Part shown: in pieces, positions 16,342 through 50,735 of the stretch
Layout of the letters: each line of letters opens with the position of its first letter
How positions within the stretch are numbered: the first letter of the stretch is position 1
From: Neoconidiobolus thromboides FSU 785
Lineage: Eukaryota > Fungi > Entomophthoromycota
NCBI GenBank assembly: GCA_025603075.1
Contig: MU626315.1
Location: 47,840-111,839 of the forward strand
Direction: 5' to 3'
DNA length: 64,000 bases
Program-made: the position numbers and the translations under genes
The notes under the pieces: generated by a model
What the model saw: only the letters and a program-made list of their open reading frames with translations
Database searches by the model: none
What the model was told of the DNA's origin: nothing

Positions 16342-16489
16342 TTTTTTATTATACTTTGACCTTGAAGCTTTCCTTTAACTTTTCTTTTTATACTTTGCTA
16401 TGTCTATCATGCTTTCGTGTTTATTAAACCTAATGACTATGTATAAGCTAATTTTTCTAAATTTTTGATCAGTTACCTTTTTAATTTCC

Positions 16490-17680
16490 TTCTATTCTGA
16501 TAATTTCCTAATTAATACACTGCCATCCATGAACTTAAAAGAAAAATAAATTTAAATTCTAAGAACATGATTAATCATGTTAATTATTTTTCTATTATTG
16601 AAAATTTATAAACTTGAGATAATGAAATTACCATAAAAATATATTTATTTTAAAATAAAAAACTAAACATTATATTAGTAAACTATTTTAGTCTTAAATA
16701 ATAATAACAAAATAGCGAGAATATCGTATATATTATAATTTCTACTAAGTATTTATTATTAATGAATATTAGAAATGTTAATTTTAAATGGCGATATTTA
16801 TAAGGAAATTCCAATAAATCGGTGGAATTAAAGCATAAGAGCATTGAGACTAAATATGAATTTGCTTGTCTGAAAAGCCAAATTAAATTCCAGTTCTACT
16901 TTTATGGTATTAGTTTTCTTATAGTCAATTAAACTATATCAATTTACCTTCACTATTTCTTATGATACAGTAAAGTATGTAAAATAGTTTAAAGCATAAT
17001 TAATCAGAGTGTAATAAAAGAATGCCTTTTTATCAATTTGAAATAAATAATACTACAATGCTCTTTATTAAAAGTAATGACATTTCTGATTTTATATTAT
17101 TTACCTTTTATTCTCATGACTTTATAATGAGTTATCAAGTGTTGTAACTTCTATTTTAATACATGCTGGAAAAATTTATTATATCATAAGAGTAACCTAA
17201 TAGAATTATTAATATTTTATTAAACAAATTTCTAAAAATTATTGTAATTTGTAAGGAATTAATAATTGAATAAAAATAACATATATAATATATCGATAAT
17301 AAGTGCTCAAGGAATCATCTATCAGTTTTATATCATAAACATATAGCCTAACTCGCAGTCAAACAACAAGTAAAACAAAATTAAATGTACGAAAGATATT
17401 ATTTTGTAAGTTCTAAATAAGCGCGCTAACACTCGTAGCTCCAAAAGGAAAATAAATATTAAATTCTAAGAACATGGTGAGTTATATAAACTGCTTTTTA
17501 ATTATCGAACATTTACAAAGCCAAGATAGTTAAGTTACTATGAATATCTAACTACATTTTAGATTAAGGACAAAACGTTGAATTAGTGTGCTATTTTAGT
17601 CTTTAGCAATAATGAAAGAGAACAATGAGAATATTGTATATATTACACTTTAAACTAGATACTTGCTATTAATAATTGTA
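16490..17680 (+). repeat. Diverged ~280-bp direct duplication (about 16490-16770 and 17400-17680)
   Basis: Shared collinear blocks AAATTCTAAGAACATG, CTATTTTAGTCTT, GAGAATAT.GTATATATTA and ACTA..TA.TT..TATTAAT in both places. Confidence 0.7.
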
Positions 17681-17886
17681 AGGAATAAAACTTACTTTTT
17701 CAGATAAATAAATTCTTATTTTAAGTTATAGTAAATCTATGTTTTAATATCACCAAATTATTAGAGTTTTTCTATAAATATGAATGTTTAGAGTATCATT
17801 TGTTTATATCAATCAAAATAAGGTACAAATATAGGGTTTTATTTTTCTTAGTGGTACTAAATAACTTTAAATAAAATTGAATATAT

Positions 17887-17932
17887 GGGGTTGTCTGAAT
17901 TAGTTTCATTATTTTATCCAATTTTTGAAAAA
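17887..17932 (+). mobile_element. Putative terminal inverted repeat of the Sola-like element (related to the MITE end)
   Basis: ATAT|GGGGTTGTCTGAATTAGTTTCATTATTTTATCCAATTTTTGAA aligns with the MITE start GGGGATGTTTTTTTTAGCTTCATTATTTTTTCCATTTTTTAAG; lies ~500 bp downstream of the transposase 3' end. Confidence 0.6.
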
Positions 17933-18382
17933 TTTTGTATTTTAAAAACTTCGCTTAAAATTCCATAAAATCAAATCTTTATTAAAATAAAAGTACCCAG
18001 ACACAGTTCTAAATCATTCTATTATAGTTTATACTGTAAGTTAGTTGAATTTCTACTAGATCTTAAATACATATTCTTATAAAACTTTATTGAGAAATAT
18101 TTATTATCAACTGCTTTATAACCAACATTGTAGATTTGTTATCAAATAAATAAACTATTTTAATGTTGTAATTACATTATTAATATATTGCCAAGTTAAT
18201 AAATAGCTGCATGGGAGGGAGTGGTCAGCCCCAAAACTATAATTAACCATCCCTATATAGTACAAGTAATAATAGTTTTTACATATTATTACAGTTACTT
18301 GTTCTTTGACTATTTATTAACTTAGCTATTAATAACTTAAGTAATAGTAACATTTAACAATCTATTTCTATCATTTAACAAA

Positions 18383-19580
18383 CTACTTAGTAAACATCGA
18401 AATTTTTAAATTCTCTGTTATTTTCGTAAGATAAGCTGGGATTGATCTTTTAATTTTTCTATTTTCTATAGACTCTATAACTCTAATTGGAACTATATTG
18501 CTTTTTTTTGATGTATCAGATACTGGATAACAATGTAGTTTATTGTTACATTTAACAAAATGTAAATACTTTTTAATGCCTTATATTTTTATCATTTTTT
18601 TTGTATTTTTGTTTCTTTCATAGTTTTTAAAAATTATAACTGTTTTTGTATTATTAACAGTTGAGTTATTAATTTTATTATGCTCGCAAATAAAAGCCTC
18701 AAATCTTGAAATTAATTGATTGATATCTTCTATTTTACCTAACGCTTCAAAACTACTTTTCCATTTTGAAAGGTTTCCGAAATGTCCATCAACTATACTT
18801 TTTCCATGATGCTCAACAAAAAAATTAACATCAATATTTAAACTACTATTTATTTTAGAAACTTGTTTAAATATATAATGTAGGAACTCTTGGGATCTAA
18901 AATGGCTTCCTGTATCTGCCCATATATTAATTTTTGTGAACTTTTTAAATAAAAGCTCTGTAGAGATTAAATCGATTAAACAATCTCCTGCATATCCTGA
19001 ATCATGATTTAATATTTCAGATAAATAATCAAAGTAAACTTTACCTATTGTTTTATCATCTTTTAAATATAAAACACCAAAACCTAATGCCGATATAGCT
19101 TGTTTATTATAATGATCTAAATTTATTGAATCTGGTCTTGTTCCTATTTCCATATTTTGTTTAAAATCTAAAATTATTATACAACTTTTATTATTTAATT
19201 TTTTAATAGCTTTATTAAATGTGTTTTTTTAAGTATCAACACAGAATTTATGTAATTTGTATAATTTTTCTTCTTCATTGAAAATTTCTTCTATCTCTGC
19301 TTTGTTTTTTATTGCTGTATTTATTTTCAAATAACTTTTTTCTAACTGTATACTGAGCACATATATTACATAGATCTGTTTTTATTGCTGGATTTTTGAA
19401 ATTACTTGGTATATATTTAAAAAATGTTGACCTAGCTACCACTTTATCTCTTAAATCATTAAAATATTTACTATATATCATTCTTCTACTTTTATTTAAT
19501 ATATATATTATCTGATGAATATTTACTATCATTATTTTTTTTATTAAATCTTGATGAAATAGTTGAATCATTTAGTAAAT
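18383..19580 (-). pseudogene. Decayed Sola-like (Sola2-type) DDD transposase, 5'-truncated
   Basis: Joined frames give STFFKYIP.NFK...TDLCNIC, then H......*...F...I..L...CIIILDFKQN, INIWADTGSHF, FFVEHHGKSIVDGHFG and KI*GIKKYLHF. One frameshift near 19300, in-frame TAA at 19229-19231 and 18581-18583; cut off at 19580 by a MITE. Confidence 0.75.
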
Positions 19581-19680
19581 GGGAGTGTTTTTTTTTGACT
19601 TCATTATTTCTTGCATTTTTTAAGCACTATTTAAGTGGAAAATTTGTTAGTAAAATTCTTAAACACAAAAATACATCCCC
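19581..19680 (+). mobile_element. ~100-bp MITE copy (orientation A); flanks AAAT / ATAT
   Basis: GGGAGTGTTTTTTTTGACTTCATT...AAACACAAAAATACATCCCC; imperfect ~15-bp TIRs. Confidence 0.9.
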
Positions 19681-19684
19681 ATAT

Positions 19685-20540
19685 ACTGTTTGGGACATCA
19701 TAATTTCCAATGGTAATCTTCTACTTTTCAAGGGTAAAACAGCCATTAATGGCCTTTTTATGGTCAAGGACTGTATCATTCCATTTCTAACACCCGTTTA
19801 ATATACTACATTTTACATTTGGTTAAGATTCACCTTTGATTTATTTAGAATCTTTTTAATTTTTAAATTTACCTACCTAAACAAACTTTATCTATGACTA
19901 GTTGAACTATCACACTAAAATATTCATTTATCGTTTTGATAATATCTAAATTAGTAAGAAAATATTCAGATTCATTATCTATAAGTATCCTTTGACTATC
20001 TTAATGTGAATGAAATTATTCCAACTTAATATTTACTTCAAAGCATAGTTGATAATATACAATGGCTTTTGCTTAATATTACTTTTGTAAATTAATGCTT
20101 CATATTTTATCCTTCTTCCACCATCTATCTGTATATCCATTTTTCTACATCGGTATTTTCCTTTGGTTTTATTTTATTTCGACAAATCATTTGTATTATA
20201 CTACTATATTTAATATTTAAATGCTCTGCTTACTTTCTCACTGATTTTCCTTCTTTATTTACCAATTTAGATAAATTCTTTTTGGCTTTGTCGCTTATTA
20301 CACTACACTTTTTTAGGGGGACTTTTTAATTCATTGATTTCTTATATACTTATTCCACCTTCATCCACCATACTTGCTTTTTTTGACTTTGTAATTTTAG
20401 TTAATATCTTTCATCACGAATAATATTCTGAGCAATGCTATATTTAGTAAATAAATGTTATGCTGCTTCCCTTATATTCATTGTCCCTCCACTCATTATC
20501 TTAATCAATTTCTTCATAATTTCTATCTCTTTTAGGAAAT
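19685..20540 (-). pseudogene. Decayed duplicate of the 3' end and downstream flank of the six-HTH gene (matches ~36153..37025)
   Basis: Reverse complement contains ATGAATATAAGGGAAGC, TATTATTCGTGATGAAAGATAT, AAAAAAGCAAG.AT, GTTAGAAATG.AATGATACA.TCCTTGA.CATAAAAA.GCCA and CCTTGAAAAGTAGAA, collinear with 36153-37025; contains stops and indels. Confidence 0.88.
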
Positions 20541-20718
20541 TTTATTTCTTTTTTTGGACCATTATAGAGTTCACTAAAAGTTTCTGCAACAATTTAATAA
20601 CCTTTTAGCTACTTAGTAAGAATTTATAAGTTCTTTTTTTTAAACTATGTAAAACAAATTTCCTTTAATATATAAAATATAGTATATATTTATATGAAGC
20701 TTAGGTCTGGAAATATAT

Positions 20719-20816
20719 GAGGATGTGTTTTTGTATTTAAGAATTTACTAACAATTTTTCTGCTTAAATAGCGCTTAAAAAATGGAGAAAATAATGAAGT
20801 CAAAAAATACACTCTC
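20719..20816 (-). mobile_element. MITE copy (orientation B); ATAT on both sides
   Basis: GAGGATGTGTTTTTGTATTTAAGAATTT...GAAGTCAAAAAATACACTCTC, flanked by ATAT 20715-20718 and 20817-20820. Confidence 0.9.
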
Positions 20817-20954
20817 ATATAATTAAATTATTAATTATTAAAGAATTTTAGTTTAATATTTTAAAAAATATCTGAAACATATTTATAGACAAAAAAGTAA
20901 GGGTTTTTACAAAAGTTTAAAAAAGTAGTGTTTTTTTTAGTCATATTGAAATTT

Positions 20955-21095
20955 AATATATATAAATATAAATATAAATATAAATATAAATATAAATATA
21001 AATATAAATATAAAATAAAAATAATAATAAAATAAAAATAATAATAAAATAAAAATAATAATAAAATAAAAATAATAATAAAATATAATAATAAT
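20955..21095. repeat. AT-only micro/minisatellite: (TATAAA)n followed by a 17-bp AAAATAAAAATAATAAT repeat
   Basis: Directly visible tandem units; they generate the spurious LYLYLY ORF 20861..21124. Confidence 0.85.
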
Positions 21096-22337
21096 AAAAT
21101 GTTTTTGAATTCATTATTATACATTATTTACTACCTTTTAAAAATCAAATAAGTTAATAAAATAACCTTTGAAGCCTTTTTAAAAGTTAATTTTTAAAAA
21201 GATTATTAAACTATATTTTTACATTGTTTTTAGTTATTTTTTAGTTGATATTTCTTTTATCTAATTAAGTCTATTATAAATATAAAAATTATTATTTTTA
21301 AAATTATTCTATTTCAATTAAAAAGATTATAAACAAAATAATGATATTTATATAAATTGAACAAAGAAATCTTGAAATTAATTTATATTTTTAACAATTT
21401 TAAATAATTTGCCAAAGTAATTCAATTATAAAAAACAATTTTATAGCTTATATTTTAACTAAAAAAAAATAGATATTAACTTTATAAGCATAAGACTTTA
21501 TTAACTAAAAAATTGAGTGTTTTAATTTGAACTGTTAAAGTTTTTTTATAAATATCAAAACAATTATATTCTTCTACTTAGTATTTATAATTTTTTATAA
21601 ATAATAAACTCTAGTCATGTTTTTGATTATAAGAGTTTAGGAAAAATTGTTTTAATTATATTAATGTAAGCATAAGTGTTTAAAAAATTAGTTTTTAATA
21701 ATATAAAATTAAAATTAAAAATATATTAACATAAAATAAGATTTAGTTATTTTTTCATTAAGTGTATTGATTAAGATCAAAATTAAAGCTAAGGGTAAGT
21801 TAATGTTAAACTAAAATTAAAAATGACTTATAAAATAGCAATTTGATTTTTTAACCTAGTTAGTATTTTTTTTGAATTTTTATAAGTTTTATTCTTTCAA
21901 ATAAATTTTTTTACTTAATCCTTTTATATTAAGCTATTATTTTTATTAAGCTAATATCAAATAAATAAAGACAATTTATTTCTATAACTAATAAACTTGA
22001 TAAATCTCAATACTAAATAGCCTTAGCAACTTTAACGTTAATAATGCCTATTTTTCTTTATAAAAATCCTTTTTCATCTTCCAGCCATCAAATTAAGGTA
22101 ATAAAACCTAACAAATAAAAGTCTTTTTTGATCCACTAATAACCTTAATAAAATAGTTGGATGGCTTAAATTTCAACTAAACTTAACTAAAGTCTCAGGG
22201 TTTGATTGGTTAATTTTATAATTTTTATACGTATCATCAAGAATAATGAATTTCGAAAATCAAGTAAAACATTAAATTAAAAAAATAACAATTAATATCT
22301 TTTTATTATTATTTATAATAACTTCAAATAAATAAAG

Positions 22338-23844
22338 ATGACTTTTATAAGAGGAAAAAGGCTGGTATCTCAATTAGTAACCAAATCACAAGTAAAAGAT
22401 CCTATACATCATCTTTTTGAAAGCTAATTCTGTACTGTATAGTTCCGTTGTCTTAGTAACACTAAACCAATTTCCATGGCTAGTAGTGGTAGTCCACCCC
22501 CAGCAGAGGGATTTCTTCCTGGTGTAGCACATTCTAAATTTATTAAAAGTAGCCCAGAACAAGCCCTAAAAAATCCAGAATTAAGGGAAGTTGGCATGGA
22601 ATATGGTAAGCAATTCATATTTAAAATAATATCAATAAAATTATAATATTTAATTTTTTTATATTCTATATTTATTAATTTAGCTGAAACTAAAAAAATG
22701 AATTATTTTACTGCATTAAATGATGCTATGGGGATTGCTTTAGCAACGGATGAAACTGCTTGTATTTTTGGTGAAGATGTAGCTTTTGGTGGGGTTTTTA
22801 GATGTACTTCAGGATTAGCTGATAAGTTTGGTAAGTTTTAAAGAAACCAAAACAAGGAGACTTTTATTTTTAATTAATAAAATAAATAGGCAAAGATCGA
22901 GTATTTAATACCCCATTAACTGAACAAGGTATAGCTGGATTTGGTATTGGTATGGCAGCTATGGGCCATACAGCCATTGCTGAAATTCAATTCGGGGATT
23001 ATATTTTCCCAGCTTTTGATCAGGTAATATTAACAAAAAAAAATCAATTATTTAATCCATTCTTATTTTTTTTAAAAAGATCGTTAATGAAGCTGCTAAA
23101 TATCGTTATCGTTCTGGTGGCATATTTAATGTCGGTGGATTAACTATCCGAGCCCCAATATCAGCAGTAGGACATGGAGCTTTATATCATTCCCAATCAC
23201 CTGAATCTTTTTTCCCACATGCAGCTGGCTTGAAAGTAGTCATCCCTAGATCTCCAATTCAAGCTAAAGGTTTATTATTAGCTTCCATTAGAGACCGTAA
23301 TCCGGTTTTATTTTTTGAACCTAAAATTTTATATCGTGCTGCTGGTAACTTAAATTAATATAATGGAATTTATATAATGGAATTTAATACTTTTATTATT
23401 TTAGTCGAGCATGTACCCATTGGAGATTATGAATTACCATTAGGAAAAGCAGAAATATTAAAAGAAGGTAAAGACGTGACTGTATTGGGGTGGGGTAGTC
23501 AAATTTATGCATTAGAAAATGCGATTCAAATGGCAGAAGAAAAACATCCTGGATTAAGCTGTGAATTAATTGATTTAAGAACCATTTTCCCATGGGATGT
23601 AGAAACTATAGTTAAATCAGTCAATAAAACTGGTCGATTGGTAATTGCTCATGAAGCTGCAAAAACTATGGGTTTTGCTACTGAAATTGCTACTACAATT
23701 CAAGAACATTGCTTTCTCCGACTTGAAGCACCAATTCAAAGAGTGACTGGATATGATACTCCATTCCCATTAGCTTTTGAAAAATTTTATGTACCTGATC
23801 TTACCCGTTGTTATGAAGGTATTCGTAAAGTTATTGAATATTAA
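22338..23844 (+). CDS. BCKDHB: Branched-chain 2-oxoacid dehydrogenase E1 beta subunit, multi-exon
   Basis: [91 protein letters not shown]. Confidence 0.97.
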
Positions 23845-34532: not shown

Positions 34533-36554
34533 ATGTCAAAAAAATCACTCAAACAAGATAAAAAGCTAATGAATACTCGGTCTCGAGGCTATGAAGCATC
34601 AAGTAGTAAGAGTAAAGCGTTTAGATTCGTACTAGCAACAACTGAACATATTGTCAATGGTGTACCAAAGGTCAATATCCCCGAAGCTTCTACCGTAATA
34701 AACGATGAAAATAAAAATAAATTAATGGAGCTAGTAGAGGATCAAGGAAAATCTGTAATGAAAGCAGCCAAAATATTAAATGTTAATTATGATAGTGCAA
34801 GAGAATTCATTAAACAAGAGAGGTTAAGGATAAGAGAAGCGATAAAAGAAGATAAAATTAAAAAAAAGATACAAGAAAAAATCGATAAAATAAAACAAAA
34901 AGAAATTGAATTGATTAATAACTATCAAACTAATACAAAAATTAATGTTGAAACTAAAAATATATTGATTATGTTAGTAAAGGATAATAAGATATCTATA
35001 AATGATGCTGCTCAAAGGCTATGTATTAATTATGATACTGCAAGGATAATTCTTGATTATGAGAAAAAAAGGCTAGAAAAAGAAACAAAAAAATTAAAAG
35101 CAATTCTACTAGAGGATCAGATAGCTTTACAAGAAGGTAAACAATTGGAAAGTTTTATTCCTCAGCACCATAATACGGTATATAATCAGTTGGATGAACT
35201 TATAACTACAGAAGAAAGGAATAACCAACGTAATGATAATCCAACTTATAGTGATATTAACTATTCTAATAAAATTGATAGTGGGAACAAACCAAATTCA
35301 TTGTTACCTATATACAATCAGAGAAAAAATATGGGAGAGGTGATGAACATGAAAACAGCAACTCTCGAAGGTGACACCAGTTTAAAAGATTTAGTCACTC
35401 AATCTAATGATATAATAAACAGTGAAATTAAAATGAATTTAATAAAATTAGTAAATGAGAAAAAAAAGTCGATAAAAGAAGCAGCAGAAATACTATCGAT
35501 TGATTTCATTGATGCGGTTCATATTATTACTCAAATAAGAAAAGAATTAGAAGGCATAACAAGTGTACAAAGGGACGAAGAAATAAATTTAGAAGAAGGC
35601 TATGGATCGACAAACTTTATTCTAAAAAGTAATAATATAATAATTAATGGGGTCGAAGATAACTTAATTAAGACATTAAATGAACAAGGAAGACCTACAA
35701 AGGAAATAGAAAAACCGCTATTTTTGAATTATAATACTGGAAAGGATAGTACTTCTGAAAAAAGAAAAAGGACGATAGAAGATAATATACAAGAAATACG
35801 GATGCGAAAGCAAGATGAAATGAATATGGAAATAGCGGAATTGATAACAATTCAAATGGAGGAAGAAATAAAGAGACAAATAGCAGAAGGAATAAAAAAG
35901 GGCAATAGCCCTCGAAAACGTATTGAAATAAAAGATGGAACAAAAGCAGAATTGATTCAATTAGTAAGTGAGCAAAAAATGAGCATCAAAGCAGCAGCAG
36001 AGCAATTATCGATTAGTTATAATAGTGCAAAGACTATCGTCTTTCGCGAAAAAGAAAGGATAAAGAAAGAATTAAATGCAAAAAGATCAAAATCACAAAC
36101 ACAAGATGAAATTGATAGTTTAAAAGAAATTAGGTTAGCTAATTTGCAAAGAATTCGTAAAAGAGATGGAGAAGTTTCAGAAAAATTAGTCAAAATAGTA
36201 AGTGAAGGTAAAATGAATATAAGGGAAGCTGCAGAACACTTATCTATTAGTTATAACAGTGCACAGTCTATTATTCGTGATGAAAGATATAGGTTAGTTA
36301 AAATTATAAATACAAAAAAAGCAAGCATAATGGATGGTAATGAAGTAAGTATAGAAGAAATTGATAAATTAAAGAGTATCCCTAAAAAAAATCGTGGTGT
36401 AATAAGTGATAGAGCTAAAGTAGCATTATTTAAATTGGTAAACGAGCAAGGAAAACCCGTGAGGGAAGCAGCTGAATTGTTGAATATCAAATATGGTAGT
36501 GCAATGCAATTGATTCGTAGAAGTAAAAAAAATCAAGTAATAATAAAGATGTAG
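34533..36554 (+). CDS. Protein with six dispersed helix-turn-helix repeats (transposase-type HTH), no catalytic domain seen
   Basis: 673-aa intact ORF with six copies of a K..L..LV.E...S...AA..L.I.Y.SA..I pattern, e.g. NKLMELVEDQGKSVMKAAKILNVNYDSAREFI and AELIQLVSEQKMSIKAAAEQLSISYNSAKTIV. Confidence 0.85.
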   Translation: MSKKSLKQDKKLMNTRSRGYEASSSKSKAFRFVLATTEHIVNGVPKVNIPEASTVINDENKNKLMELVEDQGKSVMKAAKILNVNYDSAREFIKQERLRIREAIKEDKIKKKIQEKIDKIKQKEIELINNYQTNTKINVETKNILIMLVKDNKISINDAAQRLCINYDTARIILDYEKKRLEKETKKLKAILLEDQIALQEGKQLESFIPQHHNTVYNQLDELITTEERNNQRNDNPTYSDINYSNKIDSGNKPNSLLPIYNQRKNMGEVMNMKTATLEGDTSLKDLVTQSNDIINSEIKMNLIKLVNEKKKSIKEAAEILSIDFIDAVHIITQIRKELEGITSVQRDEEINLEEGYGSTNFILKSNNIIINGVEDNLIKTLNEQGRPTKEIEKPLFLNYNTGKDSTSEKRKRTIEDNIQEIRMRKQDEMNMEIAELITIQMEEEIKRQIAEGIKKGNSPRKRIEIKDGTKAELIQLVSEQKMSIKAAAEQLSISYNSAKTIVFREKERIKKELNAKRSKSQTQDEIDSLKEIRLANLQRIRKRDGEVSEKLVKIVSEGKMNIREAAEHLSISYNSAQSIIRDERYRLVKIINTKKASIMDGNEVSIEEIDKLKSIPKKNRGVISDRAKVALFKLVNEQGKPVREAAELLNIKYGSAMQLIRRSKKNQVIIKM

Positions 36555-38935
36555 AAAAGTGAAGATGTAGAAAAATGTAAATGTAAAAAGATAGTAGAAG
36601 TATTAAATGTAAAGGCTTAATTCACAGAAGTGTGTTTAAATAAAAGCGATTGTATGTTATCAAATGAAAAATAAAGCAAACATCAGGTTAAAATATCTCG
36701 TTAGTATCAAGATGACCAAGGATATCTATAATCGATGGATTCAAATTCTTTGGTATTAGTTTAAAAAATATTAAAGTGATAAATAAATCATTTTTTAATG
36801 TGATAATTCAGTTAAATATGAGAATACCTTAATAAAGTAAGTAACTTTAAATATTGAAAAGATTTTAAATAAACCAATGATACATTATAACTAAACACAA
36901 AAGATAATATATTGAATAGTTGTTAGAAATGAAATGATACACTCCTTGAACATAAAAAAGCCACTTGTAGTTGCTTTGTCCTTGAAAAGTAGAATGTTAG
37001 TATTGAAAACTATGATATCTAAATGTTATGTTTTGTTAGATTTATTTGATACGGTGAATTTTGGCGAAAATCCTTATGTTCATTAATAATTAGCTGCTAT
37101 CTTTGATCAATATCAAAATATAACTAGACCTGGTTAATTTCAACTAAATCAAAGATTTACAAAGCCTTATAAGCAAGATGTAAATATCCAGCTTAAGTTA
37201 TCAATTAGAATTTCAATGTTCTATTTTTTATATTGAACTGAACTAAATATTTTATTGGTATCATTTTATCTATAATGCTCTGTTATTATATATATTTACT
37301 TCAGTTATAAAATTCGACACAAATGGTATTATTAAGTGTGTGATTCTAATACTAAGTAATTTAGATTAATATATTATTTTAATAGTGTATAAAAAAGGTT
37401 TTATAAAGCTATAAAATAATTTCAATTAGGTTCTAAATAAAATCATATAAATCAATACCTTGGACAGTATTTTTCTATATAATGATTCATTTTACTTTTT
37501 AATCATTGTCCATTTTTGGGTTTAAAATTTGAAAAATAAGGTGGATTTTAAGCAAAAGAACACTCTCATAAAAATCAACTTTACTTTTTGTTCACACACA
37601 TTCGTTTAAAAGTGGTCCTACTTTTAAATTACCTTGTAAAAATCTTTTATTAAATATCAACCTATGACTCTTTAATGATGATAAAGTACACTAATGGATT
37701 GAATAAAAAATCAAATTAATATAATCTTTAAACATTTTCTATTAATATCACTATATAATACATATCAACAGCGCAAAAAGAAAGTAAGAATAGTTACAAT
37801 TATTTCTATCTTAAAAGGGAAGGAGATGGATGGGTTTGTTGAAAACTTGTGCGCTATTAAGAATGCGAATATCAATAATATAAGGCTTGAAGAATTTTCA
37901 ATGCAACCATATTATATAAACTTATTCTATCATTTATAATCTATTTTTAAATATTATAATGTAATAAAAAATATAAGAAATAAAATGTTATAAACATCAT
38001 TGATAACTTTTTGAATTTTTCGTAATTAATCAATTATTATATTATAATCAAATTTTACAACTAAATAAATAATGTTAAAAAAGATTTATTTGCTTAAAAA
38101 ATTAAAATATATTATATCAAATAAACTAATAAAATCATTTATCTTTAAAGAATCAACATATTGGTAATATTATAAAAATAGTCAATATTTTCACATTGAC
38201 CTGAGTATACGATACGTTGATGAGTCAAGCTGAAAAAAAGATATCATCGAAAAAATTTAGTCATATATACAATCATAAATCGAATCTAGAATTCAAATTT
38301 TTTCTGTATTACAAGCTAATACAAATATTAATTCTTTAAATACTGGGAGTTGGATATTGAGGATAAGTTGTAATTAAAGATTTTTCTATTATTAAATTTT
38401 TCGGATAGTTATTTTAGTTATAGAATTATTATAATAAGTTCGTCATAAACGAATATTCTGAGCGGAGATGGATACAAATAGATATAAGCTTTTTTGGCAT
38501 AATACTTTTATGTATTGAATAATTATGTATGTGCTAATTATAGATATAATTACTATGCAAAATTTTAACAAAGTTTATTTAAAGGAATTTGATCAATGTT
38601 CTACACCTGCTAATTAAAGCTTTAAAGAATAAGATTTATTATTTATAAGTACTTCAATAGTCGTTGATATTCATAAGTATTACTAATAGCTTATTTTTTT
38701 TAGTTTAAAACCTTTAATAAAATCAATGCTAAGCAGTCTTTAAGCTTATTTTCTATAAGCACTTTAGCTATATTTTCGATTCTAGTTTTGATAAATTTTA
38801 TCAAACTACAATTAACTAAACCAAACCACCGCCAATCAAGCCACCCAATCAATTTCCTAGAATTGAATAGTTGATTTTTAAACAAAGTCTAAGCAATTAA
38901 TATTTTTAAATTTTTTATTTAAAAACTAATAAGAG

Positions 38936-39667
38936 ATGGGCGATTCATGGGTAACAATTAATTCACATAAGACAAACGGTATTAAAAGCAAGCCTAAAAA
39001 CCAAGTAAAATTTATATTTGGAGATGATGATTCAGATTCTTCACGTAGTTATCAAAATAGTCCACAGACAAAAAAGAGTAGTAGTAAACCTTTATCCAAA
39101 TCCCCCTCAGTAAGTAATAAATTTTTATCCGAAACTAATGGCTTAGATATTTTAAATAATATCAAAACAAAACCAAAGCCGAGTTCGCCTTCCATACGTA
39201 TCTCTTCTGAGAAAGCTGTTGGTAGTGCTATCCTACCCAATTTGGTTAAACCGGAAGTAGAAAGCTCAAACACAAAACTACCAATCACTTCTCAGTTTCT
39301 GATGAATAATAAACTGACGGCAACCCAGATACAAGCTACTTTAAGAAGTAGTAAAAGCAAATCAAACGAGTTAACTCAAGAACACCAACACCAGCAACCT
39401 TTAACTTCTAGTCAAAATCCAATAGGACGTAGTAATGCAGGTTCAACTATCTCTAGAACACAAGCTAAACTAATGTTACAAAGACAACATAGCTATAATG
39501 AAGACGAAAGTTCACTAAATCATCCACAGAATCAGATTAAATTGTCAAAAGAGCTGGACAAAATCAATAGAGAGTTTTTATGGCTTAGAAAATATCATAA
39601 CCCTGTTCAAGACTCATTAACTAGAGTTATGGAAAGAAAAAGGATGCAGTTAGCTAATAGTAAATAA
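38936..39667 (+). CDS. Tco89-domain protein (TORC1 accessory subunit-like)
   Basis: Ser-rich N-terminus followed by SRTQAKLMLQR...LDKINREFLWLRKYHNPVQDSLTRV, the conserved Tco89 C-terminal pattern. Confidence 0.7.
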   Translation: MGDSWVTINSHKTNGIKSKPKNQVKFIFGDDDSDSSRSYQNSPQTKKSSSKPLSKSPSVSNKFLSETNGLDILNNIKTKPKPSSPSIRISSEKAVGSAILPNLVKPEVESSNTKLPITSQFLMNNKLTATQIQATLRSSKSKSNELTQEHQHQQPLTSSQNPIGRSNAGSTISRTQAKLMLQRQHSYNEDESSLNHPQNQIKLSKELDKINREFLWLRKYHNPVQDSLTRVMERKRMQLANSK

Positions 39668-42739: not shown

Positions 42740-42936
42740 GGGAATGTATTTTTGTATTTAAGAACTCTACTAACAATCTTTCCACTTAGACAGTGTTTAA
42801 AAAATGGAAAAAATGGGGATGTATTTTTGTGTTTAAGAATTTTACCAACAAATTTTCCGCTTAAATAGCGCTTAAAAGGTGGAAAAAGTAATGAAATCAA
42901 AAAAATCATCCCCAAATGATGAAACTAAAACATCGC
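42740..42936 (-). mobile_element. MITE copy (orientation B) interrupted by a second MITE
   Basis: GGGAATGTATTTTTG...AAATGGAAAAAAT (to 42814) resumes at 42918 as GATGAAACTAAAACATC, the missing end of the consensus. Confidence 0.8.
42815..42913 (-). mobile_element. Nested MITE copy (orientation B); AAAT target duplication
   Basis: AAAT|GGGGATGTATTTTTGTG...AAAAAAATCATCCCC|AAAT. Confidence 0.92.
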
Positions 42937-50638: not shown

Positions 50639-50735
50639 GGGAGTGTTTTTTTTGACTTCATTATTTTTTCCATTTTTTAAGCACTATTTGAGTAGAAAAA
50701 TTGTTAGTAAAATTCTTACACAAAGATACATCCCC
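50639..50735 (+). mobile_element. MITE copy (orientation A); ATAT on both sides; ~50 bp past the stop of WOPR paralog 3
   Basis: ATAT|GGGAGTGTTTTTTTGACTTCATT...CACAAAGATACATCCCC|ATAT. Confidence 0.92.

Follow-up and report, generated by a model that had tools for sequence, protein, structure and literature searches.

The MITE-bracketed gene fragment at 19581-20816 is most probably a product of ordinary genome decay in a transposon-rich fungus, Neoconidiobolus thromboides, and not of gene capture by a transposon, because the two bracketing MITEs (A on the left, B on the right) came later, each separately. The stretch in which it lies, called the window throughout, is 64,000 nucleotides of AT-rich eukaryotic DNA (18-32% GC), and all coordinates count from its first letter. 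Between the MITEs sits a decayed copy of the 3' end of a gene with six HTH repeats, here called the cargo; to the left of MITE A stands the relic of a putative Sola2-like transposon (Table 1). The initial annotation had read this arrangement as Pack-like capture or composite transposition; in our estimate the MITE pair very probably captured or moved nothing. The whole is best explained by an old, dead partial duplicate, later transposon insertions and a deletion between two MITEs, an account that we hold with moderate confidence.

Table 1. Features of the locus and of the parent gene segment, in window coordinates
Feature	Position	Strand	Remarks
Truncated Sola2-like (putative) transposon	17887-19580	- (transposase remnants)	positions 1-1658 of a 2.37-kb element
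Transposase remnant ORFs	18581-19153 and 19275-19571	-	in the relic
MITE A	19581-19680	+	complete family member; nhmmer E 1e-25, full model
Nine ambiguous bases	19685-19693	.	between the ATAT of MITE A and clear source homology
Cargo, decayed inverted copy of the six-HTH gene 3' end and downstream DNA	19694-20538	-	71.5% identity
Cargo part from coding sequence	~20140-20538		
Cargo part from non-coding downstream DNA	19694-20139		
Unmatched AT-rich spacer	20539-20714	.	176 bases, cargo to target duplication of MITE B
MITE B	20719-20816	-	complete family member; nhmmer E 2e-22
Parent segment	36154-37019	+	401 bp at the 3' end of the six-HTH gene (34533-36554), then 465 bp of downstream DNA

The cargo had been described as a decayed inverted copy of part of the six-HTH gene, and this is borne out by alignment: 19694-20538 and 37019-36154 share 71.5% identity across 874 alignment columns (E 6e-118). 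One collinear alignment covers HTH repeats 5-6 (401 bp of coding sequence) together with the 465 bp downstream. The cargo is a DNA-level duplicated gene fragment, that is, an unprocessed pseudogene of the six-HTH gene. A processed (retro-) pseudogene was considered and rejected: the copy lacks an A-run or poly(A) tract at its 3' end (19685-19700) and ends at the MITE. At least eight frame-breaking indels and three in-frame stops disable it, and its differences from the source are even over the codon positions (0.23, 0.21 and 0.23). Besides the MITEs, only two repeats of 180 bp or more occur in the window: the cargo with its source, and 16537-16776 with 17443-17686. The latter, just left of the transposon relic, form a direct duplication of ~240 bp whose halves are 72% identical.

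The six-HTH ORF itself (673 aa) is intact and matches HTH_23 and HTH_28 in Pfam; the region downstream of the gene has no match in Rfam. A search of 5.8 billion proteins with the whole protein, or with its C-terminal 139 aa, returned no relative besides the protein itself. Since the six-HTH gene is without relatives in the protein database, no closer parent of the cargo is known, and the search brought up no full-length paralog that could take the place of the gene at 34533-36554 as parent.

Homology to the source breaks off at both ends of the cargo. Past the left end (16400-19580 compared with 37000-39000) and past the right end (20539-20718 and 20817-22400 compared with the DNA upstream of the source) we found only AT-rich chance matches. 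When the transposon and the MITEs are removed, the host flanks score z values of 0.1 and 0.8 against shuffles in comparison with the source continuation, and the spacer 20539-20714 has no significant match to the source upstream DNA or elsewhere in the window. On the left, homology had been said to reach the edge of MITE A. Clear homology does come nearly that far, the local alignment ending 9 bp short of the ATAT that adjoins the MITE, but the last 9 bp are ambiguous. Bases 19685-19693 and the ATAT agree with the source at 7 of 12 positions when a 1-bp gap is admitted, over a stretch too short to decide; with the transposon continuation, too, there is agreement at 7 of the first 9 bases (counting from the ATAT), again over too short a stretch to decide.

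Both bracketing MITEs belong to a family whose alignment defines an element of ~99 bp, with termini GGGGATG.../...CATCCCC and a 4-bp target duplication, in most cases ATAT. The duplication is genuine, because copies with the non-ATAT flanks ATTT/ATTT and AATT/AATT exist. An nhmmer profile finds 18 members in the window, and there are 11 more in other loci. MITEs A and B are each 98-100 bp long and each has its own two ends. As described in the initial annotation, they face each other: the arms 19591-19654/20744-20807 and 19653-19685/20714-20746 are 89-91% complementary, and MITE A on the forward strand and MITE B on the reverse are 84-91% complementary across ~100 bp, with inverted outer termini. 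The window alone contains seven neighbouring inverted MITE pairs no more than 1.1 kb apart, and for this reason we regard the bracketing as a product of crowding.

The flanks of the two elements differ. MITE B has a perfect ATAT/ATAT duplication (20715-20718 and 20817-20820), and its distance from the cargo, given earlier as ~175 bp of unmatched sequence, measures 176 bp. With this gap and a target duplication of its own, MITE B is better read as an independent insertion than as part of a capture, a caveat that the initial annotation had already entered. MITE A is flanked by AAAT on the left (19577-19580) and ATAT on the right (19681-19684), so that the mismatch reported there is confirmed by the sequence. 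A one-base mismatch within the 4-bp duplication is found in 4 of the ~13 scorable MITE copies in the window, however, and AAAT/ATAT at MITE A alone is therefore no sign of rearrangement. MITE A is most closely related to the copies at 50642 and 53761 rather than to MITE B.

The cargo is far older than either MITE A or the transposon copy. The Jukes-Cantor (JC) distance between it and its source comes to 0.31 for all sites and 0.36 for the 454 non-coding ones, which amounts to ~0.16-0.18 per lineage. From the family consensus, MITE A is 0.05 distant (5 of 99 positions, 5.1%) and MITE B 0.11-0.12 (11 of 98 positions); the transposon relic differs from its sister copy by 10%. With a 99-bp element, an 18-copy consensus and equal neutral rates assumed, a MITE coeval with the duplication is expected to differ at ~14-16% of positions, and 5 or fewer differences in 99 have a probability of 0.0008-0.004, so MITE A is significantly younger than the duplication. 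MITE B, judged on the same basis, is not significantly younger (P 0.12-0.27). RIP-like hypermutation, which would inflate the age of the cargo, was rejected: the changes are symmetrical (G>A plus C>T 69, A>G plus T>C 71), the source ORF is intact and the cargo has no directional GC-to-AT bias. The ratio of transitions to transversions between cargo and source is 1.8 to 1. Among the transposon and MITE copies in 18000-19583 the differences are mostly transitions, ~109 as against 24 transversions in sequencing run X1 (see below).

These ages bear on the idea that the fragment is filler DNA, a templated insertion from 16 kb away made in the repair of a transposon-induced break that also truncated the transposon. 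The source does lie on the same contig and in inverted orientation, and one end of the fragment abuts the transposon junction, but the fragment, at 0.31-0.36 from its source, long predates both MITE A and a transposon copy 10% from its sister. A second copy of the cargo in another data set, described below, moreover seems to have the fragment without MITE A. We consider a filler origin barely credible.

To the left of MITE A the transposon relic has an intact left terminus, GGGGTTGTC, preceded by ATAT (17883-17886). Over 17972-19580 it is 89.6% identical to a full copy on another contig of the same genome (L001, 9520-11890). The L001 copy is apparently complete at 2.37 kb, with the ends GGGGTTGTC... 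and ...GGACAACTCC and ATAT on both sides, and is usable as a family reference. The match to it ends exactly at 19580, where L001 goes on for another 709 bp; the earlier observation that the relic is cut at the edge of the MITE thus stands. The missing transposon positions 1659-2367 (709 bp) are nowhere in the window, and hence not to the right of MITE B.

The longer remnant ORF (18581-19153, 190 aa) has 766 unnamed relatives at E<=0.001 in the representative library, and proteins 86-89% identical to it are encoded on other contigs of assembly GCA_025603075.1. The relic transposase has no match in Pfam, which is without a Sola2 model. Sola2 elements reportedly make a 4-bp target duplication, a finding attributed to Bao and colleagues in 2009, and this fits the family of the relic. 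In a 2017 survey of fungi, Sola2 was almost absent, being found in one single case (PMC5751038), which makes this a transposon family of some note. Two assembly contigs, L003 (1469 bp) and L004 (1207 bp), consist wholly of transposon fragments, which points to difficulty in assembling these repeats; in L004, positions 153-1438 of the transposon are replaced internally by 464 unrelated bases.

MITEs nested in this transposon are common. At three other places, two in L002 and one in L003, a nested MITE has transposon on both flanks. MITE A resembles them in that its left flank is also transposon interior; in the L002 and L003 copies the transposon resumes after the MITE, whereas at MITE A it does not. 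If the assembly is right, the interior of the transposon (position 1658) is here joined to a pseudogene fragment, and the left MITE stands at a junction of unrelated DNA, which supports this part of the initial annotation. In several contigs of the Logan collection, a MITE end with its ATAT is joined through 31-36 other letters to the transposon at window position ~18064 (18064-18068), which points to a subfamily of the transposon that carries a nested MITE near the left end and has gone on to multiply.

The history that we propose for the locus runs as follows. The tail of the six-HTH gene, together with the DNA downstream of it, was duplicated at the DNA level and inverted, 16 kb away, the landing site being the long intergenic region from an MFS transporter gene to the next gene. 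That region would later have gathered transposons, as do all other intergenic regions of the genome: MITE B presumably entered an ATAT that lies 176 bp past the duplicate, and the Sola2-like transposon inserted to the left of the duplicate. MITE A would have started as an ordinary nested insertion in the transposon at position 1658; such a beginning is most likely because other transposon copies carry nested MITEs. A second MITE in the same orientation may then have landed inside the duplicate, which would have been longer at the time, and unequal recombination between it and MITE A would have deleted the last 709 bp of the transposon along with the rest of the duplicate. What would be left is one hybrid MITE, whose flanks, AAAT and ATAT, were never partners.

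With a deletion between MITEs, no coincidence is needed to account for the end of source homology at the MITE: the proposed event would have removed what lay beyond. We put forward such an event at the left junction tentatively, as the likeliest cause, and the particular form given to it here, unequal recombination of the nested MITE with a second MITE in a once longer duplicate, is likewise possible rather than probable; neither a second MITE nor an allele from before the deletion was seen. Unequal recombination between dispersed repeats is known to cause deletions, for example between Alu elements or between LTRs. As in those cases, one hybrid repeat would be left, its flanks are not a matching target duplication, and it joins stretches of unrelated DNA; the difference is that the repeats here are only ~100 bp long and ~10% diverged, which makes recombination inefficient. 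Recombination of the nested MITE with the right terminus of the transposon itself is excluded, because the right half of MITE A is near-consensus MITE sequence, unlike that terminus (...GGACAACTCC), which is only ~60-65% like the right half of the MITE.

Independent sequencing data come from Logan contigs of four runs, X1-X4, under three labelled organisms, which we aligned to 18000-20940. Each run has one contig that leads from inside MITE A (19660/19661) to inside MITE B (20740-20751), with 0, 1, 11 and 16 differences from the window in X1-X4, respectively. As the same inner junctions recur in four runs, both are real and predate the split of the isolates; nor is there any presence/absence difference of the MITE-cargo-MITE unit between the four runs. 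The cargo is single copy at a likeness of at least 80% in X1, X2 and X4 (cargo-bin depth 449 in X1), and the 44 kb of other loci of the genome hold no further copies of the unit. Relative to single copy, summed depth is ~10,000 times in the MITE bins and ~1,000 times in 18000-19583.

Run X3 has a second cargo copy, which is 13-17% diverged and lies on a contig of 1918 bp. Letters 1443-1863 of the contig match 19688-20105, so that the match starts three bases beyond the ATAT of MITE A, with 1442 letters upstream. Because contigs break at MITEs, this copy is probably without MITE A, which suggests a lineage that has the fragment but lacks MITE A at this place. Over 19688-20348, X3 (organism C) contains two cargo versions at equal depth (~24 each), 1% and 13-17% from the window. 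Contig totals are 46.6 Mb in X3, compared with 25-29 Mb for X1 and X4, and X3 may represent a hybrid, a genome that has been duplicated or a sample of two strains.

The join of relic to cargo across MITE A is seen in the deposited assembly only, as Logan contigs break inside MITEs, and this raises the matter of a collapse or misjoin through the MITE. The real transposon with its nested MITE would then continue for the missing 709 bp, while a different MITE would lie in a longer duplicate; the assembler would have merged the 100-bp repeats and dropped the interval, or joined two loci. Both sides of the join are repeats at the summed depths given above, no independent contig spans MITE A, and contigs of 1.2-1.5 kb made of transposon alone (L003, L004) are what a short-read assembly would give. 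A collapse also accounts for the homology stop free of coincidence, and it predicts the same sequence as the deletion between MITEs. Of three 31-mer junction words sampled, which are unable to link both flanks to one MITE, only one occurs in any run, X3. On the other side, the window is without N and the contig extends for tens of kb both ways, the right-hand junction of MITE A with the cargo is confirmed in four data sets, and missing spanning contigs prove nothing, given that Logan contigs drop low-depth connectors between high-copy repeats. All told, we find an assembly error at this point unlikely, whether it collapsed one locus or joined two.

Another route to the same junction needs neither an assembly error nor a deletion. 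In it the block 17887-19680, running from the left terminus of the transposon to the far end of the nested MITE, transposed as a shortened element into an ATAT at the end of the duplicate. Such a move would account for the cut at the MITE edge and for the AAAT/ATAT mismatch; the block has ATAT on both sides (17883-17886 and 19681-19684), both of its ends start with a common GGGGNTGT motif, and for Ac/Ds there are documented cases in which termini from two separate elements are used together (PMC4270019, PMC9910405). Matching ATAT flanks weigh little, however, ATAT being the usual target. The insertion would have had to fall within ~10 bp of the natural end of the duplicate, a coincidence that we estimate at 1-2%; the host DNA left of 17887 has no homology to the source continuation (z 0.1); and none of four other transposon copies has a second junction of position 1658 with a MITE. 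This makes the block movement improbable in our view.

Alternative transposition and macrotransposons of linked Ac/Ds elements are described in maize and rice (PMC4270019, PMC9910405, PMC3239180). By analogy, a similar process is a conceivable origin of the block 17887-19680. The Ac/Ds cases were shown genetically with active elements, whereas here the parts are 5-12% decayed and fixed, with no evidence of movement. More generally, we doubt strongly that Sola2 drove the movement of any block whose two ends come from different elements, be it MITE-cargo-MITE or the truncated transposon with its nested MITE. If true, block movement would be the first macrotransposition or gene-fragment shuffling by the rare Sola2 superfamily in an early-diverging fungus.

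The reading that the initial annotation had favoured, a Pack-like or composite element in which the two MITEs and the DNA between them captured and moved the gene fragment, is not supported. The inverted MITEs do form, with their outer ends, a long terminal inverted repeat, three of the four bases are alike in the outer flanks AAAT and ATAT, and plant Pack-MITEs with gene fragments are known (PMC2817404). As a target duplication of the whole unit, however, three of four bases are uninformative, since the family prefers ATAT as a target. Three of the four runs have a single copy of the unit (at a likeness of at least 80%) and its inner junctions are fixed in all four; MITE A is younger than the fragment, the interrupted transposon does not resume to the right of MITE B, and MITEs A and B do not pair as nearest relatives. 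On its right side the duplicate breaks off 176 bp from any MITE, which would place as much unrelated DNA inside the supposed element. At the donor site, nhmmer finds no MITE within 5 kb of the parent segment 36154-37019, and the source gene is intact. Capture by a Pack-like or composite element is, on these grounds, very improbable, and a duplicate older than MITE A and the transposon copy is the reading that we retain.

Pack-MITEs and Pack-MULEs are transduplicating non-autonomous DNA transposons, mPifvine-2 of grapevine among others (PMC2817404). The present locus is like them in that a non-coding host gene fragment lies between inverted repeats of a MITE family. The fragment of a Pack element, however, is within one element, between its two terminal repeats, whereas here there are two complete MITEs; and Pack elements are usually multi-copy with a target duplication of their own, unlike this single-copy unit. 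The two MITEs are of unequal age: MITE B (0.12) is compatible with terminal repeats as old as the fragment, and MITE A is not. The flanks were, moreover, never contiguous: taking the unit out would bring transposon position 1658 on the left against DNA of near single-copy depth on the right of MITE B.

Outside the Neoconidiobolus thromboides genome the significance of the locus is small. It serves as a worked example of how a dense MITE population (~1 per 3.5 kb) makes gene fragments seem 'bracketed' by chance, and of how relative dating tells capture apart from later insertion. Contigs of this assembly that run across MITE or transposon repeats are not to be trusted without long reads; if long reads confirm the left junction, a MITE-associated deletion or rearrangement will have been documented in this fungus.

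The MITEs also stand close to one another and to transposon ends elsewhere. At L002 9412-9545 a MITE abuts a transposon terminus with a shared ATAT as the sole separator, Logan contigs contain tandem MITE-MITE joints, and in the window the copies at 42740-42813 and 42815-42907 adjoin. The ATAT that each MITE insertion regenerates is apparently a preferred site for further insertions. On the right of MITE B, 20950-21100 holds two adjoining microsatellite arrays, one with the 6-bp unit ATATAA and one with a 17-bp A/T unit.
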